DNA of 64,000 nt from Macrostomum lignano (Eukaryota). The stretch is taken from contig NIVC01002433.1 in the NCBI GenBank assembly GCA_002269645.1, forward strand, positions 110,440 through 174,439, in the 5' to 3' direction. The position numbers and the translations under genes were made by a program. Below, one piece after another: positions 1,199-51,154 of this stretch. The notes below the pieces were generated by a model that saw only the letters and a program-made list of their open reading frames with translations, made no database searches and had not been told where the DNA came from. Each line of letters opens with the position of its first letter. The first letter of the stretch is position 1.

Positions 1199-4100
1199 TT
1201 ATGGCCTAGTGTTCTGTAGGCCCAGCTCGTCAAGTCTGGAATGTGTAATTAAATAACACCGTTTTGTTAACCATATTTTGAACTTGAAGCAAACCAAAGT
1301 TAACTTACTTTTTCAAAGGGGGTCAGCTTCCCAGAGGGGGTCAACTGTGACTTCTCGGAGGGGGTCAACTGTGACTTCTCAGAGGGGGTCAACTGTGACT
1401 TCTCAGAGGGGGGTCAACTGTGACTTCTCATAGGGGAGGAGGGGGGTCAATTGTGACTTCTCGGAGGGGGGTCAGCTGTGACTTCTCATCGGGGGGGTCA
1501 ACTGTGACTTCTCAGAGGGGGTCAACTGTGACTTCTCAGAGGGGGGTCAACTGTGACTTCTCATAGGGGAGGAGGGGGGTCAATTGTGACTTCTCGGAGG
1601 GGGGTCAGCTGTGACTTCTCATCGGGGGGGCAACTGTGACTTCTCAGAGGGGTCAACTGTGACTTCTCGGAGGGGTGTCAACTGTGACTTCTCAGAGGGG
1701 GGTCAACTGTGACTTCTCGGAGAGGGTCAACTGTGACTTCTCAGAGGGGGGTCAACTGTGACTTCTCAGAGGGGGGTCAACTGTGACTTCTCAGAGGGGG
1801 GTCAACTGTGACTTCTCAGAGGGGGGTCAACTGTGACTTCTCAGAGGGGGGTCAACTGTGACTTCTCAGAGGGGGGTCAACTGTGACTTCTCATAGGGGA
1901 GGAGGGGGGTCAATTGTGACTTCTCGGAGGGGGGTCAGCTGTGACTTCTCATCGGGGGGCAACTGTGACTTCTCAGAGGGGTCAACTGTGACTTCTCGGA
2001 GGGGTGTCAACTGTGACTTCTCAGAGGGGGTCAACTGTGACTTCTCGGAGAGGGTCAACTGTGACTTCTCAGAGGGGGGTCAACTGTGACTTCTCAGAGG
2101 GGGTCAACTGTGACTTCTCAGAGGGGGGTCAACTGTGACTTCTCAGAGGGGGGTCAACTGTGACTTCTCAGAGGGGGGTCAACTGTGACTTCTCGGAGAG
2201 GGTCAACTGTGACTTCTCAGAGGGGTCAACTGTGACTTCTCAGAGGGGGTCAACTGTGACTTCTCAGAGGGGGTCAACAGTGACTTCTCAGAGGGGGTCA
2301 ACTGTGACTTCTCAGAGGGGGGTCAACTGTGACGTCTCAGAGGGGGTCAACTGTGACTTCTCGGAGGGGGGTCAACTGTGACTTCTCAGAGGGGGTCAAC
2401 TGTGACGTCTCAGAGGGGGTCAACTGTGACTTCTCGGTGGGGTTCAACGGTGACTTCTCAGAGGGGGTCAACTGTGACTTCTCAGAGGGGGGTCAACTGT
2501 GACGTCTCAGAGGGGGTCAACTGTGACTTCTCGAAGGGGGGTCAACTGTGACTTCTCAGAGGGGGTCAACTGTGACTTCTCAGAGGGGCCGGGTCAAATG
2601 TGACTTCTCGGAGGGGGTCAAATGTGACTTCTTGGAGGGGGTCAACTGTGACTTCGCAGAACGGGTCAACTGTGACTTTTTGGATTAGTTACTTCCACTG
2701 TGACTTCTCAAACAGATGGGGGGTCAACTGTGACTTCTCGAAGGGGGTCAACTGTGACTTCTCAGAGGGGGTCAAATGTGACTTCTCAGGGGGGGTCAAC
2801 TGTGACTTCTCGGTGGGGGTCAACTGTGACTTCTCAGAAGAGGTCAACCCGTGTAAAAGTTAACAAGACACCAAAATCCACAGTAAATAAACTTCCTCTA
2901 GCAACTTTTGAACACACCGAAAAAATATTTAGCAACAACCAACTTACTCCTTGAGCAGCTTGGTGTTTCGCTCCATTTCGCCTTGAACTAGGTCAGTAGA
3001 CAAAATGAGGTCCCGGATTCTGGACAAACAGAGTAAAAAAGACATGAACTGATGAGGCTAAAGCAGAAATGTTAATAAAAATTCCAGAATACCGCACTTT
3101 ATACGTGTTAGAATAAATTTTATTCAACAGACTTAGAATTGGCACTCACGACTTGCTCAGAGCGGTTAAGTCGCTCTCTTTGCTGGCTTTAGTCGCTTTG
3201 AAGTAGGCGGTTAGGGCTTCAAATATTCCGCGATACACCTGCGGGATGGTTGTTGTGTATTAATTAGATACAGTTGTTAATCTTCGAAGCGTTTCCAACA
3301 TATATTCTGTTGTGTCGCTATACTACTACCACTACCCCTTAATTGACTTCTCCCACTCTACCTCTTACTCTACTTCTCCCACTCTACCCCTTACTCTACT
3401 TCTCCCACTCTACCCCTTACTCTACTTCTCCCACTCTACCCCTTACACTACTTCTTCCACTCTACCCCTTACTCTACTTCTCCCACTTTACCCCTTACTC
3501 TACTTCAGCTCCCACTCTACCCCTCACTCTACTTCTCCCACTCTACCCCTTACTCTACTTCTCCCACTTTACCCCTTACTCTACTTCTCCCACTCTACCC
3601 TTACTCTACTTCTCCCACTCTACCCCTTACTCTACTTCTTCCACTCTCTTACTCTACTTCTTACACTCTCTTACTCTACTTCTTCCACTCTCTTACTCTA
3701 CTTCTCTCACTTTAGCCCTTACTCTACTTCTCCCACTCTCTTACTCTACTTCTCTCACTTTAGCCCTTACTCTACTTCTCCCACTCTACCCCTTACTCTA
3801 CTTCTTCCACTCCACTCCACCCCTTACTCTACTTCTTCCACTCCACCCCTTACTCTACTTCTTCCACTCCACCCCTTACCCGTCACATCAGTTTCCCAGG
3901 CACTCACATTATCGTGCAGCATGTCCAAATCGGCCTCCAAATCCTGCGCGGCCAAAGCCGTCTCCAAGCGTTCCAGCTTCTTGACCTCCGCTTGCACGTC
4001 CTGCATCCATTCGGACAGGCCGGCTTGCACGTTGCCAAGCGTTTCTATGCAGCAACGCAGTACGACGTTCTGGCAGTCGTCAAGGCAGCTGTTCAGCAGG

Positions 4101-4374
4101 TGCTGGTCCGACTTGAAACAGTGCCGCATCAGGTCTGTTAGCAGCTGCGAATCTTTCTTCCTGCAATTGGAATGGATTTGTTGCAAATGATCTGTATGTT
4201 TTTATGTTACGCACAAACTACTCTACCGATGTAAGTAGAAAAGAAGGGATACTAAAAGTCTGTTTGTCTGTCTGTCTGTCTTAGTGTCTGTGTTAGTGTT
4301 AGTGTCTGTCTTAGTGTCTGTGTTAGTGTCTGCCTGCCTGTCTGTCTGTCTGTCTGTCTGCCTGTCTGCCTGCC

Positions 4375-4469
<95 letters not shown>

Positions 4470-4592
4470 GTGTCTGTCTGTCTGTGTCCGTCTGTCTGTC
4501 TGTCTGTCTTAGTGTCTGTGTTAGTGTCTGCCTGTCTGTCTGTCTGCCTATCTGTCTGTCTGTCTGCCTGTCTGTCTGTCTGTCTGCCTGCC

Positions 4593-4629
<37 letters not shown>

Positions 4630-4718
4630 GCCTGTCTGTCTGTCTGCCTGTCTGCCTGTCTGTCTGCCTGTCTGTCTGCCTGTCTGCCTGTCTGCCTGTC
4701 TGTCTGTGTGTCTGCCTA

Positions 4719-4791
<73 letters not shown>

Positions 4792-4848
4792 GTGTCTGCC
4801 TATCTGTCTGTCTGTCTGTCTGTCTGTCTGCCTGTCTGCCTGTCTGCC

Positions 4849-4924
<76 letters not shown>

Positions 4925-7900
4925 AACACAGACCAGCTCTGAGCGCCGGCAGTGCTCACATAAACTTGTTAATCATCTGGCCGTAGCGCTCGTAGACCTG
5001 CTCAACCCGATGAAAGTCGGCACTGAGACACTCGGCCCCCTGCTTGGGCGCCAACAGTCTGGCAAAGATGCCGTTGAAATTGCTGGCCAGCTGCAGCGAC
5101 GGCACCAAAGACGATTGCTCGTTGGACATGCCGGCAAGAGCGGAGCCGCTATTAGAAGCAGCATCGGGTTTCAGATTTGACTGCTGGGACACCACAGTTT
5201 CCAATTTGCGCTGCCATTGACTGATTTTCTCCGACAGCTCCTGCAAATTATTGCGAGGTTTAAAAATGAGGAATCGAACTCTTTGGAAAGCCGATAGGTG
5301 CTCCGAAAATTTATGGGATAGAAAATAGAGACGGATTTAATATTTAAAATATGGGATAGATGATTAAAGGAATGTGATTAACTCGATCTAGGAATCGCTG
5401 AGGATTTGGAGAGAATTAGATCTGACTAGGAACTATTGATGATTAGGGATGAGTCAGGGATAATTGAAGATTAAGGATGGGATAAGGGATAATTGAGGAT
5501 TAGAGATGGGTTAGGGATAATTGAAGATTAGGGATGGGATAAGGGATAATTGAGGATTAGAGATGGGTTAGGGATAATTGAATATTAGGGAATGGGATGA
5601 GGGAGCAGTGAGGATTAGGGAATGGGATGAGGGATCATTGAGGATTAGGGAATGGGATGAGGGAGCAGTGAGGATTAGGGAATGGGATGAGGGAGCAGTG
5701 AGGATTAGGGAATGGGATCAAATGTGCATGTGAATCAGGGGATTAGGGAATTTGATTAATCCAGAGATTTGGTTAGAAGATTTGAGAATATTAATAGTAT
5801 GGTAAGAGTTTTAAGCTGAATTAAGGGATTAGAGAAATAACTAAATAATAATCCAGCAGTAAAGAACTCTCACCTGACAGCCAGTCTGAGTTCGAACCAG
5901 CTGGGCCAGCTCCATCAGTCTGCCAACCTTCTGCTCAGAGCTGCTCACAACCGCCAGCTTCGCTCGCACTCTTTGATAGGCCTCTCGTCCGCGGCGATCC
6001 ATGAGGCACAGGGCGGCGTCCTTGGCTTCCAGGGTGAGCGCGTGATTTACGTGGCAGACCGAGGCCAGCTGACGGCAAACCAGAGCGTGGCGATGGGCCT
6101 CGTCAACGAAATCCTTGATCTCCTTCGGCTGGTTGGGATCCGGTACGCGGGGACGGGATTTCACGTGGCCTGTTGGGAAGAGGGAATATTATTACTATCA
6201 AATGCGAATAAGCAGTAAGGCCTCTACTGAAAGAGATGGGATCTCTACTAAAAGAGATGGGATCTCTACTGGAAGAGATGGGATCTTCACTGAAAGAGAT
6301 GGGATCTTTACTGAAAGAGATAGGATCTCTACTGACAGAGATGGAATCTTCACTGAAAGAGATGGGATCTCTACTGAAATAGATGGGAGCTCTACTGAAA
6401 GAGATGAGATCTCTACTGAAAAAGATGGGATCTCTACTGAAAGAGATGGGATCTCTACTGAAAGATATAGGATCTCTCTACTGGAAGAGATTGGATCTTC
6501 ACTGAAAGAGATGGGATCTCTCTACTGAAAGAGATGGGATCTCTACTGAAAGAGATGGGATCTCTACTGAAAGAGATAGGATCTCTCTACTGAAAAAGAT
6601 GGGATCTTCACTGAAAGAGATGTGATCTCCACTGAAAGGGATGGGATCTCTACTGCAATATCTGTTTCCATCCAGACATTAAATAACTTACCAACATCGA
6701 ACTTGCCAATGTCCAGCGTACAGCTAAACTGCTGCTTGGACAGCACAATAACGGGACTCGTCAGCGTAGATCCGGTTGGAAATGCCGACACCTCCTGAGA
6801 TCGATAGAACACGACAATCTCCTCCTTGGGGAAGCTGGTGACTGAGGCCAGGCTTGTCAGAAGGGAGTCCAGGCTTCTGCGCATTTGTATTAGTTTTTTT
6901 ATTATCGGGTAATTAAAATTTAAATCTGGTTTAGATAGATACACTCGGATGGGAAGCTATAAGATAGATAAGATAGATTAGGCTGAGATAGAAGTATACA
7001 GATTAGGGCTGAGATAGAAGTAGACAGATCAAAGCTGAGATAGAAGTATACAGATTAGGGCTGAGATAGAAGTAGACAGATTAAGGCTGAGATAGAAGTA
7101 GACAGATTAGGGCTGAGATAGAAGTAGACAGATTAAGGCTGAGATAGAAGTAGACAGATTAAGGCTGAGATAGAAGACTCACTCCAACTCACTGCTTCTG
7201 CGAGAAGACCAAATCGGGCATAATCATATTGCCAGCAACGAAATAATAAGTACAATGCTGACATTTGTACCAATTAACGGTCTCGAAGAACTTTGGAAAT
7301 GTCCACTGCTCGTTGAAATTAGACACTAGTATGCCTTGCAGCAGTTCAACTAGAAGTTTCTGTAGCGTCACCGACAGCGGACAGGTTGGCGGCAGGCTGT
7401 TGTGATAATTAATTGGACCATTCAAAGTGTCCTGAGTAGCCCAGATCGCATGCGGCGGTTTCTTCACCATCATGTCAATCATCTGGGCGTGGTTGCTTCG
7501 AACGCCTTCGAAGGGAGCGAATGGCAGGCGGCCGGTAGCGGCCATGAACAAACTGACGCCTAGGGACCAGAGATCGCACTCCGGCTTGTGACCGCCTCTG
7601 GCGCCGCCGCCCATGCCAGCGTGCATTCGCTGGTGCACCTCCAGATAGATGCTGGGATGCAGGAACTCGTAGGTGCCAACTAGGCTTTGAAAATCTGCAC
7701 CGTCTTCGAGTTCGCGGCTGGAGCCGAAGTCGGCCAGCTTGAATACGGGCTGACGGCGGTTGTCGTAGCTGATCATGATGTTGCCTTGGTGACCATTGGG
7801 GTGCCGGGTTGGCTTGGATATTGCTCATCGCGATATAGGCTCAGCTTAGATTAGGTTCAAATTGGGCTCAGGCAAGGGTTCAGGTTGGGTTCAGGTCGGG

Positions 7901-9780
7901 TTCCGGTCGGGTTCAGGTTTGGGTTCAGGTTTGGGTTCATGTTTGGGTTCAGGTTTGGGTTCAGGCTTGGGTTTAGGTTTGGGTTTAGGTTTTGGTTCAG
8001 GTTGGGATCGGGTCGGGTTCAGGTTAAATTTAAATTGGGTTTAGGTTGAGTTCAGGTTGGGTTAAGGTTTGGGTTCAGGTTTGGGTTTAGGTTTGGATTC
8101 AGGTTTGGGTTCAGGCTTGGTTTCAGGTTTTGGGTTCAGGTTTGGATTCAGGTTTGAATTCAGATTTGGATTCAGGTTGGGCTCAGGTTAAATTCAAATT
8201 AGGTTCAGGTTGGATTCAGTTTAGGTTCAGTTTGGGTTCAGGTTGGATTAAGTTTGGGCTCAGGTTAAGTTCAGGTTGGGTTCAGGTTGAATTCAGGTTT
8301 GGGTTCAGGTTTGGGTTCAGGTCTGGGTTCAGGTTTGGGTTCAGGTTTGGATTCAGGTTTGGGTTCAGGTTTGGGTTCAGGTTTGGGTTCAGGTTTGGGT
8401 TCAGGTTTGGGTTCAGGTTTGGGTTCAGGTTTGGGTTCAGGTTTGGGTTCATGTTTGGGTTCAGGTTTGGGTTCAGGTTTGGGTTCAGGTTTGGGTTCAG
8501 GTTTGGATTCAGGTTTGGGTTCAGGTTTGGGTTCAGGTTTGGGCTCGGGTTGTATAACGGTTACTTTGTCTTCTTGTACAAAGATCAAATACAATGAATA
8601 ACAAATCATAAACATAATTAATACAGTTGCCATACCTGGCTTAATATCGCGATGAACAATCTTGAGCTGTTCGCGAAGATAGGCCAACCCGTCGCCTACA
8701 GAAGAAAAGGGAACAATAAACGTCTGAATTAAAGTAATTATTTATTCATCTTTACTACAGACTAATATAGTAGCACTTACACATGTTGTACAACAGAGAA
8801 AGAAAATCTCTGTCGTGCATGCCTAATTTGTTGTCTGGCTTTTTCAAATACTCGTGCAAACTGTTGCCACAGCAGTACTCCAGTATTAGACCGGTTTTGT
8901 CTACTCTCATGTTGTCCTGAAAATTTTTGCAGTTTGTAAGGAAGGGTAAAGACTCTTTGTTCCAAGCAGTCTTGGTCGTCATAGACTTTATGGGGGGCAA
9001 AGTCAAGAATTGTACATTACTAATCCCTATTTTATTTTGAGAATCAGTACTGCCGGCACTTATTTTGGCGCCACTGGCAGGCACTTATTTTGGCGCCACA
9101 GACAGGCACTCATTTTGGCGCCACAGACAGACACTCATTTTGGCGCCACAGAAAGTCACTCATTTTTGCGCCACAGAAAGTCACTCATTTTGGCGCCACA
9201 TACAGAAGTTCATTTTGGCGCCACAGACAGAAGCTCATTTTGGCGCCGCAGGCACTCATTTTGGCACCACGGGGACTTATTTTGGCGCCGCAGGCACTCA
9301 TTTTGGCGCCACGGGGACTTATTTTGGCGCCGCAGGCACTCGTTTTGGCGTCACGGGCACCTTTTTTGGCGCTGCAGGCACTCATTTTGGCGCCGCAGAC
9401 AGACAATCTATGTCCAAAGGTCCTAGGTTCGAACTCTACTATCAACGCACCTGAAACTGGACTCCAGTAATTAGTCGCACAATATTCTCGTGCTTCAATT
9501 TCTTCAAAAGTTCCACTTCTCGCCGTGGCGGTGTACCTTTGAACACTTTCACAGCGTAAAAGTCGCCAGTATGGATGTCCCGACAACGATAAACCGAGGA
9601 TGTGACTCCATCAGCTAAATAGTCCAAGTCCGGGCACCAGGTGTAATTGCCAGCCACAACCAGGTTGTAGGCGCCTCGTCGAGGACTGGATTGAGCAGCG
9701 GCGGTTGCCGCAGCCGCTGCCGCAGCCGCATTAGCTCGTGACATTGCTGCTGGCCCAACTCCAACACTTCGAGCATCCAT
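1199..9780 (-). CDS. TBK1: IKK-related Ser/Thr kinase (TBK1/IKK-epsilon/ik2 family), ~797 aa, 12 exons
   Basis: Exons in transcript order: 9780-9451, 8916-8781, 8695-8636, 7784-7193, 6876-6692, 6169-5874, 5240-4960, 4160-3880, 3306-3272, 3238-3150, 3019-2948, 1235-1199; all GT-AG and phase-consistent. Motifs [54 protein letters not shown] (cf. TBK1 [26 protein letters not shown]), followed by ULD-like and helical scaffold regions and a C-terminal ..[12 protein letters not shown]. No LDWSWL NEMO-binding motif seen. Exons 8-10 boundaries are the least certain; TBK1 vs IKBKE not resolvable. Confidence 0.88.
1318..2845. repeat. Minisatellite, 21-23 bp unit GGGGG(G)TCAACTGTGACTTCTCAGA, kinase intron 11
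   Basis: Tandem units with variable G-run; recurring variant blocks at ~1429, 1562, 1892. Confidence 0.95.
3335..3879. repeat. Minisatellite, 26 bp unit CTCTACTTCTCCCACTCTACCCCTTA, kinase intron 8
   Basis: Tandem units; on the sense strand the array begins at the intron GT. Confidence 0.95.
4258..4924. repeat. (CTGT)n microsatellite, kinase intron 7
   Basis: Long imperfect CTGT/CTGC run. Confidence 0.97.
5440..5720. repeat. Degenerate 28-30 bp purine-rich minisatellite (GGGAATGGGATGAGGGAGCAGTGAGGATTA-like), kinase intron 6
   Basis: Two related unit types in tandem. Confidence 0.85.
6222..6655. repeat. Minisatellite, 21 bp unit GAGATGGGATCTCTACTGAAA, kinase intron 5
   Basis: ~20 copies; the unit contains the hairpin GAGAT-GGG-ATCTC. 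Confidence 0.95.
6975..7177. repeat. Minisatellite, 26 bp unit GGCTGAGATAGAAGTAGACAGATTAA, kinase intron 4
   Basis: ~8 tandem copies. Confidence 0.93.
7845..8548. repeat. Minisatellite, 12 bp unit GGTTCAGGTTTG, kinase intron 3
   Basis: Homogeneous at 8290-8545, degenerate toward 7850. Confidence 0.95.
9050..9400. repeat. Minisatellite, ~21-27 bp unit CACTCATTTTGGCGCC(A/G)CAG-based, kinase intron 1
   Basis: Tandem variants; the same unit occurs inside the MITE at 48707-48985. Confidence 0.9.
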
Positions 9781-11518: not shown

Positions 11519-14500
11519 CTAGAAGGCGGTAACAAACAGCCGGTCCAGATCCACGCAACCGTAAGCATTGGCCTGAAGCGCTTCCCGGACTACAGAATTA
11601 AGCGCCGGCACTTTTCTAGTCCAATAGTCGTAGGCGCACAGTTGGGTGTACAGCTGACGCTCGCAGTAGGACCGCTGCAGGTGGCCTCGGACGCAGGCCG
11701 GACAGCGTGGACGGCCTCGATCAAGATTGCTAATTAGCCTGCGGGTTCGCCACTGACAGGCCTGCCGGAGGCCGGGTGGGAAGGGAGAAAGCATATCGTG
11801 ATTTATTACCTGTACTTGTCAATTATCTCTGCCCTATTTAGCAAGGCCTGGTTTGGCTGTGAAATATTCTTATTCGATAAACTAAATAACGTGTTTATCT
11901 ACCTACCAGATCCTTCTAGAACAGTCTATTAAATAAATTTACCTGTCCCATAGATTACCGTATCTGTCTCCTAATTATCTGCTTCTTTGATCTCCTTTCC
12001 AGACTACCAGATATCTTACCTACCTGTCTACCAGACTCCTTACATGCATGTCTACTAGATCTCCTACCTATCTATCTCCCAGACCCGCTATCTGTCTCCC
12101 AGACCCTCTGTCTGTCCCCCGGACCCCCTACCTGTCTCCCAGATCCCCTGTCTCACAGAACCCTACATGTTTCCTAGATCCCCTACCTGTCTCCCAGACC
12201 AATACATCTGTCTCCTAGACCCCTCTACTTTTCTCCCAGATCCCTTTCTCTATCTGTCTCCCAGATCCCTCTACCTGTCTCCCAGATCCCTCTACCTGTC
12301 TCCCAGACCCCTCTACCTGTCTTTAAAATCCTTCTACCTGTTTCCCAGACCTCTCTACCTGTTTCCCAGACCTCTCTACCTGTTTCCCAGACCCCTCTAC
12401 CTGTTTCCCAGACCCCACTACCTGTTTCCCAGACCCCTCTACCTGTTTCCCAGACCCCTCTACCTGTTTCCCAGACCCCTCTACCTGTTTCCCAGACCCC
12501 TCTACCTGTTTCCCAGACCCCTCTACCTGTTTCCCAGACCTCTCTACCTGTTTCCCAGACCCCTCTACCTGTTTCCCAGACCTCTCTACCTGTTTCCCAG
12601 ACCCCTCTACCTGTTTCCCAGACCCCTCTACCTGTTTCCCAGACCTCTCTACCTGTTTCCCAGACCCCTCTACCTGTTTCCCAGACCTCTCTACCTGTTT
12701 CCCAGACCTCTCTACCTGTTTCCCAGACCCCTCTACCTGTTTCCCAGACCTCTCTACCTGTTTCCCAGACCTCTCTACCTGTTTCCCAGACCCCTCTACC
12801 TGACTCCCAGACCCCTCTACCTGTTTCCCAGACCTCTCTACCTGTTTCCCAGACCCCTCTACCTGTTTCCCAGACCCATCTACCTGTTTCCAGACCCCTC
12901 TACCTGTCTCGCAGACCCCTCTACCTGTTTCCCAGACCCATCTACCTGTTTCCCAGACCCCTCTACCTGACTCCCAGACCCCTCTACCTGACTCCCAGAC
13001 CTCTCTACCTGCCCTACTTGCACCTCAATTCCATATCGAACATTACCTGATCATCGCACACAAACTCGCCCCGATAATAGCGTCGAATATGGCGCTCAAT
13101 CGGCGCCAACAATTCGCTAGCCGCGTATTCGTCAGGCAGAGGCGCCTTGGCCCGGCAGTGCGGGCACAGTTCGTCTTGGGACTGGCCGCCGGATTCCAGC
13201 TTGGCCGGCTCCACGGGTCGGCGACAGGCGCGGCAGGGAAGCTGCAGGGAATTCGTTAGAAATTCAAGGGAAAGAGGATGTAGATTTATAAAGGTGTCGG
13301 TCATGCGCGCTTAGATTTGGGGTAATCAAGACTTCGATACTTACACGTGTACTTTACTGATATGCTGGCCTGTCTAACACATTCGTCTACCTGTCTGCCA
13401 TATTTACCTGTCTGATATTTACCTGTCTGACACATCTACCTGTCTGAGACATCCACCTGTCTGACACATCTACCTGTCTGACACATCTACCTGCCTGACA
13501 CATCTACATCTACCTGTCTGACACATCTACCTGCTGACACATCTACATCGACCTGTCTGAGACATTTACCTGTCTGACACATCTACATCTACCTGTCTGA
13601 GACATTTACCTGTCTGACACATCTACATCTACCTGTCTAACACATTTACCTGTCTGAGATATCTACCTGTCTGACATCTACCTGTCTGACACATCTACCT
13701 GCCTGACACATCTACATCAACCTGCCTGACACATCTACATCTACCTGTCTAACACATTTACCTGTCTCAGATATCTACCTGTCTGACATCTACCTGCCTG
13801 ACACTGACACATCTACATCGACCTGTCTGACACATTTATCTGTCTGACACATCTACATCAACCTGCCTGACACATCTACATCAACCTGCCTGACACATCT
13901 ACATCAACCTGCCTGACACATCTACATCAACCTGCCTGACACATCTACATCAACCTGCCTGACACATCTACATCAACCTGCCTGACACATCTACATCAAC
14001 CTGCCTGACACATTTACCTGTCTGAGATATCTACCTGTCTGACACATCTACCTGTCTTACGCAACTACCTGTCTAACATCTTTATCTACTTATCTGACAT
14101 CTCCAATCTACATGTCTGACATTTAAACCTACATTATATCTTACACTTACACATAGCTTACTAAATTTATTATTTAGCTGTCTACTATCTTACTTTACTA
14201 TTAGTCTTACAGCTATCTGACCTACCTTAAGCCACCTAGCTCGTATCCAAACCCATTTAGCCTCATCTTGCGCACTCACCGTAAGCGGCTCGCACAGTTC
14301 AAAGCGCACCTCTGGCTTAGCGAGAACGCTCTCGCCAGCCGTTTCGCCTTCGCCGTCGTCGCCATCCTCGCCTAGAGCTGCCGGCAGCATTCGGCGACGA
14401 AAAGCGCGCGAATCGACACCTACACAGTCGGCTAGATCGCCCGGATCGACTTCTTGGAGGCTCTCAGTCAGTCGGCTGACTAGAGGTAGCACCTCTTTGA

Positions 14501-17500
14501 CAAGGTAGTGCTCCCAGTCGACTGATGGAGGCGCCGACTTGTTAGCAGCGTTGGTAGAGTCTTTGGCAGCTGCGCTAGCGTTGGCGTGAAGCATTTTTCG
14601 CCATTCGGCGAGAGTGTGGACTCTGAAAAATGTTTGCAAAATTATGTTAGTTAAATGAATATGTACCTACCGATATGTATCGAAAATAAAAGTAGCTGAA
14701 TAAGCTTCAATACAGATATCGCTCAAAAATTCTGAAACTAAAGTAGAGACTTTTTCTTCTACCGATATGTATCGAAAACATGCTATCATAAATAGATTGA
14801 AAGCAATGCACCGATATGTATCGAAAACATGCTATCATAAATGGACTGGAAGCCATTAACCGATATGTATCGAAAACATTCTACCATAAATAGACTGGAA
14901 GCAATGCACCGATATGTATCGAAAACATGCTACCATAAATAGACTGGAAGCATGCACCGATATGTATCGAAAACATGCTACCATAAAAAGACTGGAAGCA
15001 ATGTACCGATATGTATCGAAAACATGCTACCATAATAGACTGGAAGCATGCACCGATATGTATCGAAAACATGCTACCATAAAAAGACTGGAAGCAATGC
15101 ACCGATATGTATCGAAAACATGCTACCATAAAAAGACTGGAAGCAATGCACCGATATGTATCGAAAACATGCTACCATAAATAGACTGGAAGCAATGCAC
15201 CGATATGTATCGAAAACATGCTACCATAATAGACTGGAAGCATGCACCGATATGTATCGAAAACATGCTACCATAAAAAGACTGGAAGCATGCACCGATA
15301 TGTATCGAAAACATGCTACCATAAATAGACTGGAAGCAATGCACCGATATGTATCGAAAACATGCTACCATAATAGACTGGAAGCAATGCACCGATATGT
15401 ATCGAAAACATGCTACCATAATAGACTGGAAGCAATGCACCGATATGTATCGAAAACATGCTACCATAAAGACTGGAAGCAATGCACCGATATGTATCGA
15501 AAACATGCTACCATAAAGACTGGAAGCAATGCACCGATATGTATCGAAAACATGCTACCATAAAGACTGGAAGCAATGCACCGATATGTATCGAAAACAT
15601 GCTACCATAAAGACTGGAAGCAATGCACCGATATGTATCGAAAACATGCTACCATAAAGACTGAAAACTATACACCGATATGTATCGAAAAGTAACTTTA
15701 AAAATAAAACAAACCTAGACGTAACGGGCCCATCTCCGGCAGCAACGAGGTACTCAACCGTGTCGCCTTTTTTGTAGCGCCGTCCAGTCGAGTCCCGTAG
15801 AGCGGCGGCAACGTGCTCGTCGTGACCTCCTCGATACTCTTCGGGAGCTTTCGTGAGCATCTTGGCAATGCTCAGCTGCTCCATCGGTACCCGATTGTTC
15901 TTTAATCCGTCAGCAACGCCGATTAAAATTTCGCGAATCTCAGCTTGAAGCGTTTCACGCGGCTTGTTGGCCAGAATGAGGTCCAGGACGCGGGACGCCG
16001 TCCCGGTTGCTATGCGACTCCAATCGCGACTGGAAATTAGAAATACAAAGAAAAACTGAATCTGCTACTTAGTAAATAGTAGAATAATCATAATATTCGT
16101 AAGGGTGCTACCTAAATTAATAAGACAAGCTGTCCAGACTACCATAGACAAGCTACCCAGAACCATAGACAAGCTACCCAGAACCATAGACAAGCTACCC
16201 AGAACCATAGACAAGCTACCCAGAACCATAGACAAGCTACCCAGAACCATAGACAAGCTACCCAGAACCATAGACAAGCTACCCAGAACCATAGACAAGC
16301 TACCCAGAACCATAGACAAGCTACCCAGAACCATAGACAAGCTACCCAGAAACATAGACAAGCTACCCAGAACCATAGACAAGCTACCCAGAACCATAGA
16401 CAAGCTACCCAGAACCATAGACAAGCTACCCAGAACCATAGACAAGCTACCCAGAACCATAGACAAGCTACCCAGAACCATAGACAAGCTACCCAGAACC
16501 ATAGACAAGCTACCCAGAACCATAGACAAGCTACCCAGAACCATAGACAAGCTACCCAGAACCATAGACAAGCTACCCAGAACCATAGACAAGCTACCCA
16601 GAACCATAGACAAGCTACCCAGAACCATAGACAAGCTACCCAGAACCATAGACAAGCTACCCAGAACCATAGACAAGCTACCCAGAACCATAGACAAGCT
16701 ACCCAGAACCATAGACAAGCTACCCAGAACCATAGACAAGCTACCCAGAACCATAGACAAGCTACCCAGAACCATAGACAAGCTACCCAGAACCATAGAC
16801 AAGCTACCCAGAACCATAGACAAGCTACCCAGAACCATAGACAAGCTACCCAGAACCATAGACAAGCTACCCAGAACCATAGACAAGCTACCCAGAACCA
16901 TAGACAAGCTACCCAGAACCATAGACAAGCTACCCAGAACCATAGACAAGCTACCCAGAACCATAGACAAGCTACCCAGAACCATAGACAAGCTACCCAG
17001 AACCATAGACAAGCTACCCAGAACCATAGACAAGCTACCCAGACTACCAAACAAGCTACCTAGATTACCATAGACAAGCTACCCAGAACCATAGACAAGC
17101 TACCCAGACTACCAAACAAGCTACCTAGATTACCATAGACAAGCTACCCAGACTACCATAGACAAGCTACCTAGACTGCCATAGACAAGCTGTACAGACT
17201 TCCATAGACAAGCTACCTAGACTGCCATAGACAAGCTGTACAGACTTCCATAGACAAGCTGTCCAGACTGCCATAGACAAGCTGCCTAGACTACCATAGA
17301 CAAGCTACCCAGACTACCATAGACAATCTATCCAGACTACCATAGACAATCTACCCAGACTACCATAGACAATCTATCCAGACTACCATAGACAATCTAC
17401 CCAGACTACCATAGACAATCTACCCAGACTACCATAGACAATCTACCCAGACTACCATAGACAATCTACCCAGACTACCATAGACAAGCTACTGAAGCCA

Positions 17501-20500
17501 CAAATAACGGCTAAAAGGAGTCCAAATGAATTACCGCACAATCTCCAGTCCTTTAACCTCGCGCTGATAGGTCAGCTCGCCATTGGCGCCCTTAGTAACA
17601 GTCAAAGCGGCGTATTTCTTCTTCCGGCAGAGCAGCATTGGCCGATAAACTCCGTCAATTTCGAGTTCCAACAATCGATAGAGCTTATTAACCTGCGCCT
17701 TAACTTTGGCGCCGATTTTCAATGCCTCGTCGTATTGGTCGCAGTGCGAATTGATCATGATTGAATCGGTGTCGCCATAGATCACTTCGAGATTGAGCTT
17801 CTCAACTAGTTCCTACGGGCAGTAGAGAGAATAGGGGACATATAGGTGTAACATTGAACTGACATTAATTTGACATTAAACTGACATGAATTTGACATTA
17901 AACTGACATGAATCTGACATTAAACTGACATGAATTCGACATTGAACTGACATGAATTTGCCATTAAAATGACATGAATTTGCCATTAAAATGACATGAA
18001 TTTGCCATTAAAATGACATGAATCTGACATTAAACTGACATGAATCTGACATGAAACTGACATTAATCTGACATTAATCTGACATGAAACTGACATGAAT
18101 CTGATATGAAACTGACATGAATCTGACATTAATCTGACATGAAACTGACATGAATCTGACATGAATCTGACATGAATCTGACATTAAACTGACAGGAATC
18201 TGACATGAATCTGACATGAATCTGACATTAGACTGACATCAAAATTACATCTAGCTTACCTTAGTCTGGGCCAAAATATCGCGACCCTTAGAGGTGACCA
18301 GAGCGGCGATGGGTTTAGCAGCGAATCGAGACTGCTGAAATCCCAAACAGCCGTAGAGCGAGTTGGCGGTCAGCTTGAGAGCTTTCTGCCGAATGTCCAA
18401 CTGCACTCGCTGTTCGTCGCGCAACTTCGGATCTTTGAGCAGGCTTTTCACTGCCCGGCGAGTCTCAACTAGTTTGCCGATTACCTGATAATGAATGTTA
18501 GTAAACATTGTCTCTGGGTGAGATTTTTAATCTTTTCAGTGAGATTTGGAATCACTGTCATGAGATTTGGAATCTCTACAGTGAGATTTGGAATCTCTAC
18601 AGTGAGATTTGGAATCTGTACAGTGAGATTTGGAATCTCTACTCTGAGATTTTAAATCTCTACAGTGAGATTTGGAATCTCTACAGTGAGATTTGGAATC
18701 TCTACAGTGAGATTTGGAATCTCTACAGTGAGATTTGGAATCTCTACAGTGAGATTTGGAATCTCTACAGTGAGATTTGGAATCTCTACTGTGAGATTTG
18801 AATCTCTACAGTGAGATTTGGAATCTCTTCAGTGAGATTTGGAATCTCTACTGTGAGATTTGAATCTCTACTGTGAGATTTGGAATCTCTTCAGTGAGAT
18901 TTGGAATCTCTACTGTGAGATTTGGAATCTCTACTGTGAGATTTAGAATTTTTGAGATTTTTAATCTCTGCAATAAGATTTAGAATCCCTTCTAAGCCAA
19001 TTCGAGACTATCACAGCAATTTCTCACCTGCGGCAGCACTCCAGCCTCACTGCCGGCCCTATCAGGCAACTCAGGCAGCCGATCTCCAGACTCCAAGCCT
19101 CGATGTTGCAGCGTTGTAAAGCACAAATTGAACTCTTGTATGATTGACGGGTAGAGCGAGTTGAAATCCAACAATAGAATGAATTTGTCGTGCAAGCCGC
19201 GTTTGGGCTCGAGGACCAGGCCGCCGGTGTATTCCGCCTTGTTCTGCTGGTTTGCAGCGTTTAATAATGGCATATTTCAACTGTGCTACTTATAGTAGGC
19301 TAGTAACGAATTTATACTTTTAAATTTTAAAATTAAAATGATTTTTTTATTTGTTAATTCAACTTAATCATAGCAAATCAATATAAATATTGATATTTTC
19401 GATACATATCGGTTTTCGATACATATCGGCATACATGTTTCTTTCCTCTTGATTTTCTAATATAGTATAATCAGTGCTAAATGAGTGCAATTTTCGCTTA
19501 AAAAGTAACCCAGGGTTTGATTGCAAATGAAGGCGACTCCCCCATCCATAAGGCGCAGAGTTTGTACGACTGACTGTGACGAGTTGAAGAAGTCAAGGCC
19601 GATTCACATCCTGTGTGAGCTAGTGCCTGAATATGAGTGGGCATACAATCTATCGGTATACACCGATATGTATCGAAAATATACTTTCTTTAAACTCATA
19701 AAATTAGGGAGCTACGTTTTGCTGCTGTTGCTGTTGCTGCTGCTGTTGATGCTGCTGTGAGTGCCTCGTTGGCGGATCGGGACAGACAAAGCCGCGCTCA
19801 GTAAACGCGTGCAACAACAGCGATTCGTTCCTCTCCGAACGGCCAAACAGCAGAGTCCTGGACCACAGATTGCCAACAATCTGAGTGATCTGCAGAGACA
19901 GCGGCAGCGCCTGCAGTTCGTGAGCCAGATTCAAGCACAGGGCCGAGTCGTTCAGCGCCGATTCCACCAGTCTGCGAACGCCTTCGGCTCGACCGCCGCT
20001 GAAGGCCTCGCGCACCTCAGCGGCTGACCAATCGCGACCGGCGCGACGGCGTTTTAATAGAGACTCGCTCAGCTCGTCTAAATCGTAGCTGCGGCCCTGC
20101 GAATGGGGAGATTTTTGAAATTGGGATCGATAAATAAAGGGAAATTTCTAAGATGTTGGGATTCTAAAAGTGAGGATTTCTCTAGCATTTTGGGATTCTT
20201 AAAATGGGGATTTTTCAAACATTATGGGATTCTTCAAATGAGGACTTCTTTAAGATCTCTGTTTCGGTTATTTATACGCATCATTAAATGGGATACTTGT
20301 TGCGTGTATTTCGATCGATGAGATTTTAATGATGAGATTGTTTGATGACACACGTATGGATGTATTTAAGATGGAATTTCTAGGAAATATATTAAGTACA
20401 GTAACTTCCATTTTAAAAAATCCAAGGGAACTTCTATTAGCTTAGCTGGTAGGTTAGCTGGTAGGTTAAACTGGTAGGTTAACTGGTAGGTTAACTGGTA

Positions 20501-23500
20501 GGTTAACTGGTAGTTTAGCTGGTAGGTTAATTTGTAGGCTAACTGGTATTTTAGCTGGTAGGTTAACTGGTAGTTTAGCTGGTAGGTTAACTGGTAGGTT
20601 AGCTGGTAGGTTAAACTGGTAGGTTAACTGGTAGGTTAAAATGGTAGTTTAGCTGGTAGGTTAAACTGGTAGGTTAACTGGTAGGTTAACTGGTAGGTTA
20701 ACTGGTAGTTTAGCTGGTAGGTTAACTGGTAGGTTAGCTGGTAGGTTAATTTGTAGGCTAACTGGTAGTTTAGCTGGTAGGTAACTGGTAGGTTAGCTGG
20801 TAAGTAACGTCAGTTAATCCAGCAAGAGTTTCATAGTCAACACGGTAGCTCAAACAATGGAGATGTGGAAGAAGATGCGTTCCAATAGTCATCAACACTA
20901 TTATATCTCCCTCACCTTAACCAGCTCCTTGGCGCTCTTCAGACAGTCCAGCAGCAGCCGACCGGCCACCGCGTGCCGAACCGGCCCCAGCCCTGGCGCC
21001 CTCTGCGGCGGCCCATTCCGTCGAAGCCGGCCGAGTTTGTGCCAGTGCGGCACCCGACACGCGGCCAGCCGGTGCAGCAGCCAAGCCAGACTGGCCCCGC
21101 AGTCGAAGCCAACCAGAACATCCGGGTCAGCCTGGTGCAGCAGGCCAAGAAGACGGCCAAGCAGAGCGCGTTCGCCAGCTTCTAACGAAGCGTTGTCCCT
21201 GCTGCCCAACAGTTCGGTGAGAGCTGCCTGGGTGCCGAATGGAACGGCGCAGCCTTGGGGACGAGCGACAACTGCTACGGCGCGTTGGAATCGGCAATTC
21301 TGCTGCTTCTGCTGTTGTTGCTTGCCTAGAAGACATTGATTGGATTTTGTTACAGTCGGCTATATAGGTGAATTGAAGCAATGCGGAGTTGAGGCTCTTG
21401 CTCAAGGACTCAAACTGTTCCGAGTGGGTCGAGAATCGAACCCCCGACCTTCAAAGTCGTGAGTCCGACGTTCTAATCACTAGGATAAAACCCAGAAACA
21501 AAAGGATCTATACATATCAATAGCTGAGAAAAAATGACAAAGTCAATTTTCTGTGATGTAGTTTTTCGGTAAACCTGCCTTCTAAAAGGTTACCAAGAAA
21601 CGTACTTTCCCGTCCTTCTAACTTGACGACTAGTCCTTGGGCGTACAGCGACGCACTTTGACTTCTAATCTAAAGACATGTACACTCGCTTTGCCATAAT
21701 TAATACAACCTGCTTACCAACTAGAGGGCCAGGCCCCAAAGCGCAGAGACCTATCTTTTTAAATTTAGAGTTTGTAGCCTAGTGTCATTGAACAAGACAC
21801 TAAACTCTGCATTGCTTCAGGTCACCCAGCTGTAAAATGGGTGCCAGCATTAGCTGGCGTATTAATTGAGGCTGTGTGTGGCGACCCTCCCCAGTCCTTG
21901 GACTGAACAGCCGTACGCAGCCTTCAGATGCGCCGCGCAATAGCTGCGGCTGAGCTGTATTATTTACAATTTAATATTAAACGACACACCTCCTCCACCG
22001 CTAGAGCCGCCGCCATCGATGCGAAACTGCCGATCAATCAGCAGAGCCAAACAGGCGACCTCTTTATCGCAGGCAACAGTGTACAGAGTAGCCACAGTTA
22101 ATGGCGGGTGTCCCAGCTTCTGCGCTGCATCAGTTGGAGTCTTTTTCAATTTTCTATGATCGTTCAGTGTGGCATCGATTTTGCACCAGCTGAACTGAGC
22201 CAGCTGGCGTTTAGCTCCGGAGATGTCCAACCAGCAGGGACCGTACAGCTGTCGGTCGAGGATCAGAGTCTCCAGGGAGCTGGTCTGCGGATTTTTTGTT
22301 TGTTTATTTAAATAATAGAAATAAACTAAACATAGAATAAGTAGATCTAGTATGTGATGTACATTATATTGTATCGGCTATAGTCGTTCTCGTGCATATT
22401 GTACATTAGATACATTAAAATTACATTATTTCTGGTGTTCCAATTTCTGCATTCTGGTGCACTTTAAGCGACATTGTCACACAACCGGCGAGAGACATTA
22501 CTGCCCATTCTGCCCACTCCCCTGAGCAGGCAAACAAGCGCGCGGATACGTACGCAGTCATACGCACAGGCACGCACTCACAAAGATATGTACAGTACTT
22601 CACTGTGCCTTGGGCATTGGCCCTCAAAGGCGTTGTTAATTTCACGAGCAGAGCCAAGCCGAGATTCCAATTTAGCCCCAAATTAATGTGACTGCACTTG
22701 GAATCGAGCCTGGGCCGCTGGCACATCAGAGCACCGCGCCAGACCACTAGCCTACGCCCCCGCAGATACACATCAGAATCGCATTAAATACACATCAGAA
22801 TCGCATTAGATACACATTAGAATCGTATTAGATACACATTAGACACACATCAGAATCACATCAGATACACATTAGAATCACATCAGATACAAATTAGAAT
22901 CGCATTAGATACAAATTAGAATCCCATTATATACCCATTAGAATCACATTATAATCACATCAGATACACGTTAGAATCACATCAGATATACATTAGAATC
23001 ACATCAGATACAAATTAGAATCGCATTAGATACAAATTAGAATCCCATTAGATACCCCATCAGAATCACATCAGATACACATTAGAATCACATTAGATAC
23101 ACATTTAGAATCACATCAGATACACATTAGAATTACACTAGATACAAATTAGATACCCATTAGATACCCATTAGAATCCCATTATAATCACATCAGATAC
23201 ACATTAGAATCACATCAGATACACATCAGAATCACATCAGATACCCATCAGAATCACATCAGATACACATTAGAATCACATCAGATACACATTAGAATCA
23301 CATCAGATAAACATTAGAATCACATCAGATACCCATCAGAATCACATTAGATACACATTAGAATCACATCACTCAGATACACATCAGAATCACATCAGAT
23401 ACCCATCAGAATCACATCAGATACCCATCAGAATCACATCAGATACCCATCAGAATCACATCAGATACGCAGCAGAATCACATCAGATACGCAGCAAAAT

Positions 23501-37630: not shown

Positions 37631-38092
37631 TCACAGATCAATGCGAGCAGTGTGCACCGGAATGTCCTGCAGCTCGGCGCGCAGGCACAGAAACTCGCCA
37701 AGCACGGTGGTGATCACAGCGGCTACCGAATTGGTCAACCACCAGACAAAATTAGTAGGGAAAGCTCTATTATAAATACAAGTAAATAGCAGATGATAGA
37801 CAAAGACTGTAACGCTAAAGTCCAAGCACTGTTTAGTCCGGCGAACAACAAACAATAGACCAGCTGACAAAGTGAACGAATTCAGCAGGCAGGTCAGTAC
37901 AGACAATTTGCCTGGGGTGTCGCGAAATCTCAGATAAGCAAATGAGAAAATTTGCGACAAACTCGGCGATTGCATCACGAACAGATTGGTTGCTAGGGTC
38001 CAAATGCATAGGCAGAAATAATACAGCGATTGCATAGCAATGATTTGGGCAATAATCAGGGCGGGATCCCAGCCGCTGGCACGGAATCCCAT
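37631..38092 (-). CDS. SYS1: SYS1 Golgi integral membrane trafficking protein, 153 aa, single coding exon
   Basis: [68 protein letters not shown] matches the SYS1 family signature (F...WDP.LI..QI...Q; R.K.CLDF; LGEYLC...EL..I). Confidence 0.95.
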
Positions 38093-46495: not shown

Positions 46496-47124
46496 ATAAA
46501 AAATATCTCAACATTAGCACAGTATGACTACTATGTGTAATACATGTAATTATGTGTGTATCTTGTACTATATTTGTACTGTATGTATTAATGCGGAAAT
46601 ACAGAAATCTCCATGTTTTGTCTCTATTTCAATGTACGCTACATGTTTGCAGTGCCACACGCCAGCATCAGAATGGTTGAGCTGTTTTCAATCTTATGCT
46701 GCACTCAAATTATTTGTTCCAATCTCCACAGCATACAGTATATAACTGCAGGTGTTAACCCGAAATTTCCTTACAAAACATCAGAATTTCACGTGTTGCT
46801 TTCTACCATTTCATTTGAGTCAGTGCCATTCCACTTGATGTGCATGTACATCATGAGCCTTGTTTTAAAACTTTGCTACACATGTACATTAAATGTTTTA
46901 ATATTTAAGAAGTTAACTTTCGAAGATGAATAGCTGGTCGCGGTTTGTATATTATTTGCTTATTATTATTATTATTTATTATTTTTAACGAATAAAAAAT
47001 ATGCCTTGAGTATTCAGTAGAGACTTTTGAATCGATTTTATTGAGAATTTTTTGCAAGATTTTGCGTTTTCTTCTAACTTAACAAATTAAATAATCCAAT
47101 TGGTAAAAATCCAGCTACAAGCTA

Positions 47125-48420: not shown

Positions 48421-48422
48421 TA

Positions 48423-50934: not shown

Positions 50935-51154
50935 GGGGGGGGGTTCACAAACTCGAAATTTAAAACGTCGAAAGCACCCTCCTTCACAAGGTCGAAATTT
51001 CACAACATCAAAAACTTTAGCAAGAGACTTCATAAGGTCGAAATTTCACAAGGTCAAAACTCATATAGCAGCCACTTTCACAAGTTTGAGTTTCGATGTT
51101 ATGAAATAATTTACTTTTCGACGTTGTGAAGTTTCGACCTTGTGAAAGCACCCC
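50935..51154. mobile_element. 220-bp MITE with G-rich termini and a perfect 8-bp TSD
   Basis: CTACCGAG at 50927-50934 and 51155-51162; termini GGGG..TTCACAA / TTGTGAAAGCACCCC; internal TTCACAAGGTCGAAATT repeats in both orientations. Confidence 0.72.

Follow-up and report, generated by a model that had tools for sequence, protein, structure and literature searches.

A probable templated inverted insertion copied from the catalytic-loop exon into intron 3 of a TBK1/IKK-epsilon-like kinase gene of Macrostomum lignano

Results

The window, the whole 64,000-nt stretch of DNA analysed here, comes from contig NIVC01002433.1 of Macrostomum lignano and carries a kinase gene whose 776-aa model, in an exact look-up of the full-length protein, was identical at every residue to NCBI PAA57914.1/PAA87979.1. 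A Pfam scan of the protein returned a Pkinase match, and the catalytic Lys, HRD and DFG elements are found as AVK, HRDIKPGN and DFG. Judged by sequence similarity, the kinase domain is nearest TBK1/IKK-epsilon (against PDB, TBK1 at E=2e-61 and IKK-beta at 4.5e-23). The Pfam families TBK1_ULD and TBK1_CCD1, both of which match mollusc and urchin relatives, had no match in the 776-aa protein, where kinase-domain families only were hit; its length and colinearity would allow for a diverged scaffold following the kinase domain. Tandem arrays make up 34% of the window and 55% of the gene, and Rfam and tRNA scans of the window gave no matches. The features of the gene needed here are as follows.

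1199 to 9780, minus strand: TBK1/IKK-epsilon-like kinase gene, M. lignano BOX15_Mlig025361g2/g3, 11 exons, 776 aa
8636 to 8695, minus strand: exon 3, catalytic loop HRD, 60 nt, phase 1-1, preceded by tgtag and followed by gtatgg
8630 to 8635, minus strand: intron 3 donor GTATGG, 8 nt from helix A (below), the furthest from the gene's GTRAGT-like donors
7876 to 8551, minus strand: 12-nt tandem repeat, about 58 copies, 676 nt, sense RNA (AAACCUGAACCC)n, C/A-rich
7850 to 7854, minus strand: CUAAU, candidate branch point, the only yUnAy in the last 125 nt of intron 3
7785 to 7786, minus strand: intron 3 acceptor AAG/GC, the only non-YAG among the gene's 10 introns
7193 to 7784, minus strand: exon 4, GNIMISYDN...DFG..., beginning directly after the intron 3 acceptor

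Exon 3 codes for 19 residues between (C) and (G), and the intron that follows it is 851 nt long. The exon numbering, the length and phase of exon 3, the acceptor position and the repeat length given in the initial annotation all agree with this gene model.

At its 3' end intron 3 contains a 37-nt inverted copy of exon 3 (7800-7836), lying 16-52 nt upstream of the exon 4 acceptor (AG at 7786-7785) and accounting for nearly all of the non-repeat sequence there. The initial annotation had described a 17-base complement of exon 3 in front of this acceptor, together with an exact and colinear 9-base match, and both were found where it placed them. Plus-strand 7820-7836, ATTGCTCATCGCGATAT, matches the exon 3 sense sequence (minus-strand 8660-8644), ATTGTTCATCGCGATAT, at 16/17 positions, and the lone difference is, as had been proposed, a G-U wobble (U8656-G7824, pair probability 1.0). 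Plus-strand 7805-7813, CGGGTTGGC, equals exon 3 sense 8691-8683 at 9/9 positions, within a longer match of 12/14 (7800-7813 against 8696-8683) whose exon-arm extension runs to the last base of intron 2. Colinear and inverted, the two blocks are spaced by 6 nt in the copy and by 22 nt in exon 3. It had also been cautioned that 8 of the 17 bases form the self-complementary ATCGCGAT; this is so, and since the match in direct orientation ends at those 8 palindromic bases the inverted orientation is unambiguous. No duplicate of exon 3 was found in the window.

7820 to 7836, minus strand: intron box A', antisense of exon 3 positions 36-52, 16/17, one G-U wobble
7814 to 7819, minus strand: filler between the blocks, 6 nt (CTATCTTCGCGAACAGCTCAAG vs TTGGAT) in place of 22 exon nt
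7800 to 7813, minus strand: intron box B', antisense of the exon 3 5' end, core 7805-7813 9/9, overall 12/14
8644 to 8660, minus strand: exon arm of helix A (AUUGUUCAUCGCGAUAU), pair probabilities 0.5-1.0, mean 0.93
8683 to 8696, minus strand: exon arm of helix B, core 8683-8691 (CGGGUUGGC), pairing 0.95-0.98

The match between the box and exon 3 is real and not a product of chance. The 17-mer alone scores 14; the best shuffle scored 12.5 and the best real window 10, and the 17-mer's score was reached by 0/2000 exon shuffles, 0/2000 intron shuffles and 0/307 real 851-nt windows. Assuming equal base frequencies, simple arithmetic gives an expectation of ~0.3 for 16/17 inverted pairs within 1.5 kb over the whole window, falling to ~7e-5 once the colinear 9-mer is added. 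About 8 independent, non-low-complexity inverted pairs of the 17-mer's score lie within 1.5 kb of each other in the window, so that short inverted pairs are commoner here than random expectation; the exon 3 pair is the only one found with an arm in an identified coding exon and a second colinear block. The assembly has three copies of the gene, on the separate contigs NIVC01002433.1, NIVC01000208.1 and NIVC01002003.1, and all three carry the same box without any difference, so that it is not an assembly artefact. In unique intron sequence the copies are 0.6-1.4% apart, and at only ~1% divergence the identity of a 37-nt box cannot tell selection from youth.

Ungapped inverted matching on 200-nt flanks of the 32 tandem arrays tested in the window rose above background at one of them, that of intron 3 (14 vs <=9), and was absent at the other 31, including the kinase gene's seven other repeat-swollen introns. 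RNAduplex energies on 110-nt array flanks proved uninformative, as unrelated pairs averaged -38 kcal/mol through long imperfect duplexes; flanks of 110 nt were also too short to take in both exon arms, hence the use of 200 nt.

Similarity is confined to the two tracts. Beyond them both flanks were at chance (shuffle fractions 0.52 inner, 0.39 outer), and the inverted tracts (16/17 and 9/9) have their template in cis 807 nt away, as is found in templated insertions. A decayed whole-exon duplication was also considered, a permissive gapped alignment having hinted at more, but was set aside on the stricter shuffle test of these flanks. Conserved coding sequence in one arm led us to reject an origin from a transposon or foldback element. 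We also rejected an origin of intron 3 by tandem duplication, since its 3' end does not repeat that of exon 3 in direct orientation. A 6-nt direct repeat, GGCAAC, occurs at both ends of intron 3; as a target-site duplication it was not retained, the donor-side copy being offset by GTAT and the repeat too short to weigh.

The position of intron 3 is common to 0/4 of Elysia, Lytechinus, Paralvinella and Octopus, whereas that of intron 2 is common to 4/4. A related species was represented by mRNA (Logan runs SRR28338163/4, evidently transcript contigs, as they have one uninterrupted 770-aa ORF), which also has exon 3. The helix B core of the box matches the M. lignano exon at 9/9 positions vs 5/9 in the related species' mRNA (4/9 sites differ), and the box fits M. 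lignano's own synonymous states. Against the same mRNA, synonymous codon identity is 0.41 in exon 3 vs 0.25-0.62 in the other exons, and no additional constraint is seen at synonymous sites of the exon arms.

In the pre-mRNA, the box and exon 3 are predicted to form a two-part helix of ~26-31 bp at -48.1 kcal/mol (helix A -24.2, helix B -16.8 to -20 kcal/mol), with z = -5.4 vs a shuffled arm and a net -25 kcal/mol once local structure has been melted. The folding proposed in the initial annotation as a check bears this out, the duplex being present in both the minimum-free-energy and the centroid structures with pair probabilities of 0.91-0.99 in all three gene copies. Taken as a whole, the 951-nt segment has no exceptional stability (z = -1.43). 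Thermodynamic folding leaves out co-transcriptional splicing, proteins and helicases. The tandem repeat is essentially unstructured in the sense strand only (-0.022 kcal/mol per nt sense vs -0.339 antisense), and the predicted helix closes its 676 nt into a loop. At the inner end of the helix the sole consensus branch-point motif would come to lie next to the 5' splice site, and the outer end is predicted to lie 15 nt from the intron 3 acceptor. Two distant boxes near splice sites thus have stable complementarity, over 17 bp and 9-14 bp.

No intron of the gene has poorer splice sites, at either end, than intron 3. Besides the AAG acceptor and the GTATGG donor listed above, the last 40 nt of the intron contain 4 U, vs 8-20 U in seven other introns compared, and no branch-point motif was found within 40 nt of the acceptor. 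The motif would place the candidate branch A at 7851, which is 15 nt 5' of box A' and 67 nt from the acceptor; CCAAC, at about 7809, might also serve as a branch site, although it departs from the consensus. Intron 7 is likewise without a proximal yUnAy, so this feature is not unique to intron 3. Two cryptic AGs coincide with the helix, one within helix A (7825/7824), use of which would add 13 aa, and one at the edge of helix B (7814/7813), use of which would shift the frame; one of the two is generated by the lone helix A difference. Poor splice sites together with cryptic AGs at the helix are the pattern that would be expected of an intron that needs its helix.

Splicing here is, on indirect evidence, normal, with exon 3 joined to exon 4 at AAG/GC in all four frame-keeping deposited models: two NCBI proteins representing three loci (g1/g2/g3) and two UniProt entries (A0A1I8I013 and A0A1I8IJ85). 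Two other UniProt models are mis-spliced at this junction. The deposited M. lignano annotation was RNA-seq-guided (PMC5730564), and use of the AAG acceptor is confirmed by the exact match of our gene model to such a protein. At 60 nt and phase 1-1, exon 3 can be skipped with the reading frame kept, as had been stated. The two skipped products looked up, 756 aa at full length and 744 aa from Met13, are absent from a collection of 15 billion proteins; as minor isoforms seldom reach such collections, this is weak evidence. In the one alternative model on record the exon left out is exon 10, not exon 3.

Discussion

We consider it probable that the box is a lineage-specific, two-block templated inverted insertion, and that its helix with exon 3 is neutral or at most a constitutive aid rather than a regulatory switch. 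Most likely, a single local templated event in the M. lignano lineage made the box: fold-back or template-switch synthesis during break repair or replication would have copied two stretches of the nearby exon 3 in reverse orientation, and the copy would have become fixed before today's three gene copies separated. In the pre-mRNA the box is predicted to zip onto exon 3 and loop out the 676-nt repeat, and at most the helix may constitutively fold the inserted sequence and the cryptic AGs out of the way. Of the three possibilities offered in the initial annotation, the neutral templated-repair scar fits the anatomy best, with two short blocks, a one-off occurrence among 32 arrays and arms without extra constraint.

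With two blocks only, and 6 nt in place of 22, the anatomy fits templated inverted insertions as reported, some 5-34 bp long (PMC11724301), as well as synthesis-dependent microhomology-mediated end joining (SD-MMEJ; PMC2943611, PMC5728401). Short reverse-complement tracts, often with several jumps and filler, are typical of SD-MMEJ, polymerase-theta end joining and fold-back (PMC2943611, PMC5728401, PMC11724301), and the 17 + 6 + 9-14 nt arrangement here matches the templated inverted insertions found at repaired breaks. Those insertions were described at induced breaks, with the template usually tens to ~100 bp away, whereas here the template lies 807 bp away today (~130 bp if the repeat expanded later) and we infer the event from a fixed germline sequence.

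The likeness could in principle be a chance resemblance seeded by the palindrome, which supplies 8 of the 17 bases in a window where short inverted pairs are relatively common, or an artefact of assembly. That the score is reached in 0/4000 shuffles and no real window, that a second colinear 9/9 block exists, that the direct-orientation match stops at 8 nt and that the sequence recurs identically on three contigs together leave this explanation barely credible; it is already effectively refuted. A stronger case can be made that the helix is functionally required, as a constitutive intron bridge making up for weak splice signals, although we regard this as doubtful. The 851-nt intron would be shortened to a small effective one, the distant branch point would come to lie next to the 5' splice site, and the cryptic AGs downstream of it, ahead of the true AAG acceptor, would be masked. 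The predicted energies (total, net and relative to shuffles), the high pair probabilities in three copies and a looped-out repeat that is unstructured in the sense strand only all speak for such a bridge, as do the AAG acceptor, the U-poor 3' end, the GTATGG donor, the sole yUnAy just 5' of the helix, the cryptic AGs within helix A and at the edge of helix B, and the precedents of zebrafish AC/GT introns (PMC4691745) and the yeast COF1 intron (PMC3239191). Against it, the case concerns one locus without covariation, the exon arms are unconstrained at synonymous sites relative to the related species, the gene's seven other repeat-swollen introns have no bridge, and intron 7 also does without a proximal yUnAy. 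It also should be considered that the helix would bury most of exon 3 and the possible CCAAC branch site as well, and that the lone helix A difference itself makes a cryptic AG. Of the RNA bridge suggested in the initial annotation, the capacity to pair is strongly supported by thermodynamic prediction, and a function is putative. Somewhat more doubtful still is the combined view that one repair event gave a working splicing aid and that splicing of a young, lineage-specific, repeat-swollen intron now depends on the box; by analogy with zebrafish AC/GT introns, this would be a structure-dependent spliceosomal intron in a flatworm, built from coding sequence.

The remaining suggestion in the initial annotation, a switch to an in-frame kinase-dead isoform, found no support in the deposited models and we think it very improbable. 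Here the helix, by forming or failing to form, would cause exon 3 to be skipped, giving an in-frame protein without HRDIKP that would be catalytically dead and possibly dominant-negative. The length and phase of exon 3 permit this, and at the outer end of the helix ~15 nt would separate the acceptor of intron 2 (8696), itself partly paired, from that of intron 3, so that exon 4's AG could stand in for exon 3's; exon choice is known to be influenced by long-range structures (PMC2724269, PMC8052449). Yet exon 3 is present in every frame-keeping model and in the related species' mRNA, the skipped products that were looked up are not on record in the protein collection, and the only alternative model drops exon 10. 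Looping out places boxes on both sides of an exon, but intron 2 has no significant complementary box, and as one arm is exon 3 itself rather than flanking intron this is not a looping-out geometry. Skipping would still require the branch site and acceptor that adjoin the duplex.

Several known systems resemble the locus in part. The zebrafish (AC)m-(GT)n introns (Lin et al. 2016, PMC4691745), bridged and spliced without U2AF2, likewise have complementary ends, a predicted helix pairing the splice sites and a poor or absent polypyrimidine signal. In those introns both arms are intronic simple repeats, in ~10% of genes and with biochemical proof, whereas here a unique coding exon pairs with an exon-derived box at a single locus, as predicted from sequence. 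In the yeast COF1 intron, structure is needed for 3' splice-site recognition (PMC3239191), and the yeast structures of Goguel & Rosbash, Libri et al. and Charpentier & Rosbash, as they are described in PMC4691745, shorten the distance from 5' splice site to branch point or from branch point to 3' splice site. The yeast helices too bring the donor near a distant branch point and hide or bypass AGs before the acceptor; they lie within the intron and were proven by mutation and rescue, while the helix here uses the upstream exon and both its branch point and its effect are putative. The Drosophila and human long-range complementary regions (Raker et al. 2009, PMC2724269; Kalmykova et al. 2021, PMC8052449) share boxes several hundred nt apart near splice sites that can form stable duplexes, or 'RNA bridges', but membership of that class rests on conservation between species and on compensatory change, and the exon arm here is not conserved synonymously. 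Dscam-type docking and selector pairing similarly joins a site near one exon with a site upstream of a downstream acceptor; unlike in that system, there is neither an alternative-exon array nor competing selector sites, and exon 3 is unduplicated in the window.

On either reading the finding does not indicate a new kind of system. If the helix is neutral, which we think more likely, the locus offers a clear case from nature of an inverted templated insertion, made in two jumps, that became fixed in a germline, and it cautions that a long-range duplex may be strongly predicted and yet have no function. Should the helix instead contribute to splicing, the locus would illustrate how a chance scar of templated repair can immediately serve as a cis-acting splicing element, and how minisatellite-swollen introns are tolerated. 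Transgenesis is established in M. lignano (PMC5730564), which makes a role of the helix in splicing directly testable.

An inverted copy of the catalytic-loop exon

The catalytic-loop (HRD) exon of a TBK1/IKK-epsilon-like kinase gene, exon 3, is genuinely copied in inverted orientation within intron 3, in two short blocks that are probably specific to the Macrostomum lignano lineage. The initial annotation had described inverted matches at 7820-7836 (16/17) and 7805-7813 (exact and colinear), and both are present: exon 3 sense matches the plus strand at 16 of 17 positions in block A (7820-7836) and 9/9 at 7805-7813, or 12/14 across block B (7800-7813). Both blocks are inverted, colinear with exon 3, and lie 16-52 nt upstream of the intron 3 acceptor, as that annotation had placed them. 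Its caveat that 8 of the 17 bases of the longer match are a self-palindrome is answered by the extent of the inverted match, which outruns the palindrome, while the direct-orientation match to exon 3 is limited to it (ATCGCGAT). The score of the 17-mer was reached in 0/2000 exon shuffles, 0/2000 intron shuffles and 0/307 real windows.

The 22 nt separating the blocks in the exon are replaced by 6 nt (TTGGAT) in the copy, hereafter the box, which directly adjoins degenerate units of a 12-nt tandem array at 7837. Outside the repeat, the 3' end of the intron thus consists of only the 37-nt box and 15 nt. Similarity was not above shuffles either inward of block A (exon 3 3' end and intron 3 5' end) or outward of block B (intron 2), which gives no support to a decayed duplicate of the entire exon region. 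Templated inverted insertions and synthesis-dependent end joining are reported to leave this kind of anatomy, two short inverted tracts with filler (PMC11724301, PMC2943611, PMC5728401).

The host gene

The gene was modelled exon by exon, confirming the extent and phase first given for exon 3.

9780 down to 1199, minus: TBK1/IKK-epsilon-group kinase gene, 11 exons, 776 aa
8636-8695, minus: exon 3, 60 nt, phase 1-1, encoding 19 residues that include VHRDIKP
8635-7785, minus: intron 3, 851 nt
2948-3019, minus: exon 10, 72 nt, in frame, 24 residues

By exact look-up, the 776-aa model is PAA57914.1/PAA87979.1 at NCBI ('hypothetical protein BOX15_Mlig025361g2/g3 [Macrostomum lignano]'), and the gene's DNA is identical to contig NIVC01002433.1 of GCA_002269645.1. 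Because the NCBI annotation was built from transcript assemblies guided by RNA-seq (PMC5730564), this match gives indirect transcript support to every junction, including exon 3-exon 4. The kinase domain is nearest TBK1 (PDB E=2e-61 vs 4.5e-23 for IKK-beta). Pfam returned kinase-domain families only for the 776-aa protein, and detected the ubiquitin-like and coiled-coil domains of TBK1 neither here nor in P0028, a protein of a related species. The glycine-rich ATP loop is degenerate (residues 55-63, exon 1, 9595-9630, minus; LADGVTSSV vs LGQGATANV in TBK1) and has lost its first Gly; LADGVTS is also found in P0028. The kinase is divergent within the TBK1/IKK-epsilon group.

Predicted pairing and splice signals

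In the pre-mRNA the box would pair with exon 8644-8660 (helix A, with 7820-7836) and 8683-8696 (helix B, with 7800-7813). Folding of a 951-nt pre-mRNA segment, an equilibrium prediction without co-transcriptional folding, proteins or helicases, bore out the folding check proposed initially: the helix appears in the minimum-free-energy and centroid structures, with mean predicted pair probabilities of 0.93 (A) and 0.98 (B). Predicted energies are -24.2 kcal/mol for helix A, -16.8 to -20 kcal/mol for helix B and -48.1 kcal/mol for the bipartite duplex (z = -5.4 vs shuffled arm), or a net -25.4 kcal/mol once the local structure of each arm is melted; without the box, the exon arms are predicted to be paired locally about 53% and 77% in the nascent transcript. 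The looped-out repeat (sense A272 C258 U85 G61) is essentially unstructured at -0.022 kcal/mol per nt, versus -0.339 antisense. The segment overall is not unusually stable (z = -1.43), so the signal is the exon 3-box helix and not general structure. These models predict a strong, intron-spanning helix.

Of the ten introns in the gene, intron 3 departs furthest from canonical splice signals: the donor reads GTATGG, the acceptor is AAG where all the others have YAG, and the last 40 nt hold only 4 U, against 8-20 in each of seven introns compared with it. A yUnAy motif lies 14-40 nt from the acceptor in eight introns and is absent there in introns 3 and 7; the final 125 nt of intron 3 contain a single one, CUAAU, whose candidate branch A at 7851 precedes the acceptor by 67 nt and the box's block A by 15 nt. 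Four AGs intervene between CUAAU and the acceptor, two of them within 10 nt of CUAAU. Of the other two, one lies inside helix A (7825/7824; if used, 13 aa would be inserted in frame) and one borders helix B (7814/7813; its use would shift the frame). G7824, the sole departure from a perfect complement, creates the AG at 7825/7824.

GGCAAC occurs on the minus strand at 8626-8631, 4 nt inside the intron's 5' end, and at 7780-7785, straddling the 3' junction, where the intron's final G is followed by GCAAC of exon 4. The pair may be a short direct repeat from the event that made this lineage-specific intron, or chance (about 2% for such windows). Retention of intron 3 would give a reading frame continuing from exon 3 into the repeat for ~120 codons, encoding (PEPK)n (8271-8687, minus), because the 12-nt unit has no stop in that frame.

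Gene copies and other species

The assembly holds three copies of the gene on separate contigs, with intron 3 of 893, 851 (this window) and 874 nt. No differences separate them in exon 3, in the box or over the final ~85 nt of the intron, and folding predicts the helix in all three. An artefact or a private mutation is thus ruled out, and the box predates the duplication. Unique intron sequence differs among the copies by 0.6-1.4%, and arrays diverge faster, by 1.7-5.1% plus indels; at the former rate less than one difference is expected in the box, whose identity is therefore uninformative on selection.

P0028 (770 aa; 70% identical over a 372-aa query, 67% full length) is a complete, uninterrupted ORF on two 2.6-kb Logan contigs (runs SRR28338163/4), evidently transcript contigs, and has the same HRDIKP-GNIM join. 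Its exon 3 differs from that of M. lignano at 4/9 positions in arm B and 2/17 in arm A, all synonymous; the identical-codon share among identical residues is 0.41, within the 0.25-0.62 of other exons. The box agrees with M. lignano's own exon 3 states; the copying therefore followed much of the divergence, or the box has tracked it.

Elysia, Lytechinus, Paralvinella and Octopus share the intron 2 position (phase 1, one codon before (A/D)G..YL), and none has the intron 3 position: in the sea urchin the coding sequence is uninterrupted there through DFGAARELED, and in Elysia, Paralvinella and Octopus an intron lies 13, 30 or 37 nt further downstream. On this comparison intron 3, or at least its position, is lineage-specific.

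Origin and possible function

The finding is a new instance of known phenomena, long-range exon-intron complementarity and templated inverted insertion. We lean towards a tolerated templated-insertion scar, its helix neutral or mildly helpful; the initial annotation had listed such a scar, and the two short blocks with filler, and flanks not above shuffles, favour it. That annotation had also proposed an RNA bridge, and a helix across the repeat is indeed predicted; that splicing requires it as a constitutive aid seems rather unlikely. The geometry is coherent with a helix uniting the donor with a distant branch point and masking cryptic AGs, as in yeast COF1 (PMC3239191), and resembles in spirit the bridged introns of zebrafish (PMC4691745). 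It fits equally well an insertion that displaced the branch point and was tolerated since it folded onto the exon, and the helix would be inhibitory if the non-consensus CCAAC (about 7809) were the real branch site. An inverted flank match above background was found in only 1/32 testable arrays of the window (14 vs <=9), so repeat-swollen introns of this genome are not bridged as a rule.

The exon-skipping switch proposed initially fares worst and is very improbable. Skipping exon 3 would keep the frame, as had been pointed out, but all four frame-preserving models (NCBI g1 and g2/g3, UniProt A0A1I8I013 and A0A1I8IJ85) retain the exon, and the two skipped products that were looked up are not on record in a collection of 15 billion proteins, which argues weakly against abundant skipping. 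The sole variant model lacks exon 10: A0A1I8I013 (752 aa) matches the 776-aa protein except for the loss of those 24 residues, and is either a real isoform or a modelling artefact of the older assembly.

Repeats and neighbouring genes

The window is minisatellite-rich eukaryotic DNA, with TRF arrays (score >=150) covering 34% of it and 55% of the kinase gene. All kinase-gene introns over 300 nt are filled by minisatellites, a different one in each, with units of 4 to 57 nt; the two remaining introns, of 85 and 130 nt, are array-free.

1327-2848, 3332-3879, 4258-4924, 5435-5718, 6222-6655, 6971-7176, 7876-8551, 9055-9402: kinase-gene arrays
below 1199: PolyA_pol-family gene, downstream of the kinase, probably a CCA-adding enzyme
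about 11519-26831, minus: family-B DNA polymerase gene, upstream of the kinase, 1556 aa (Pfam DNA_pol_B, DNA_pol_B_exo1, zf-DNA_Pol), probably the polymerase alpha catalytic subunit
37631-38092, minus: single-exon SYS1 Golgi membrane protein gene
47123-47155 and 48390-48422: perfect 33-bp TIRs, 1234 bp apart, of a mariner-family element, with its ORF at 47445-48287, minus

The polymerase gene's introns are also repeat-filled, and UniProt A0A1I8FD76 wrongly fuses the kinase to its downstream gene. The mariner-family ORF encodes an HTH domain of the Mos1 type and part of a mariner transposase domain, and the element is probably a decayed copy. An inverted pair at 51044-51061 and 51130-51147 (18 nt, one mismatch, 68-nt spacer) could form a hairpin.
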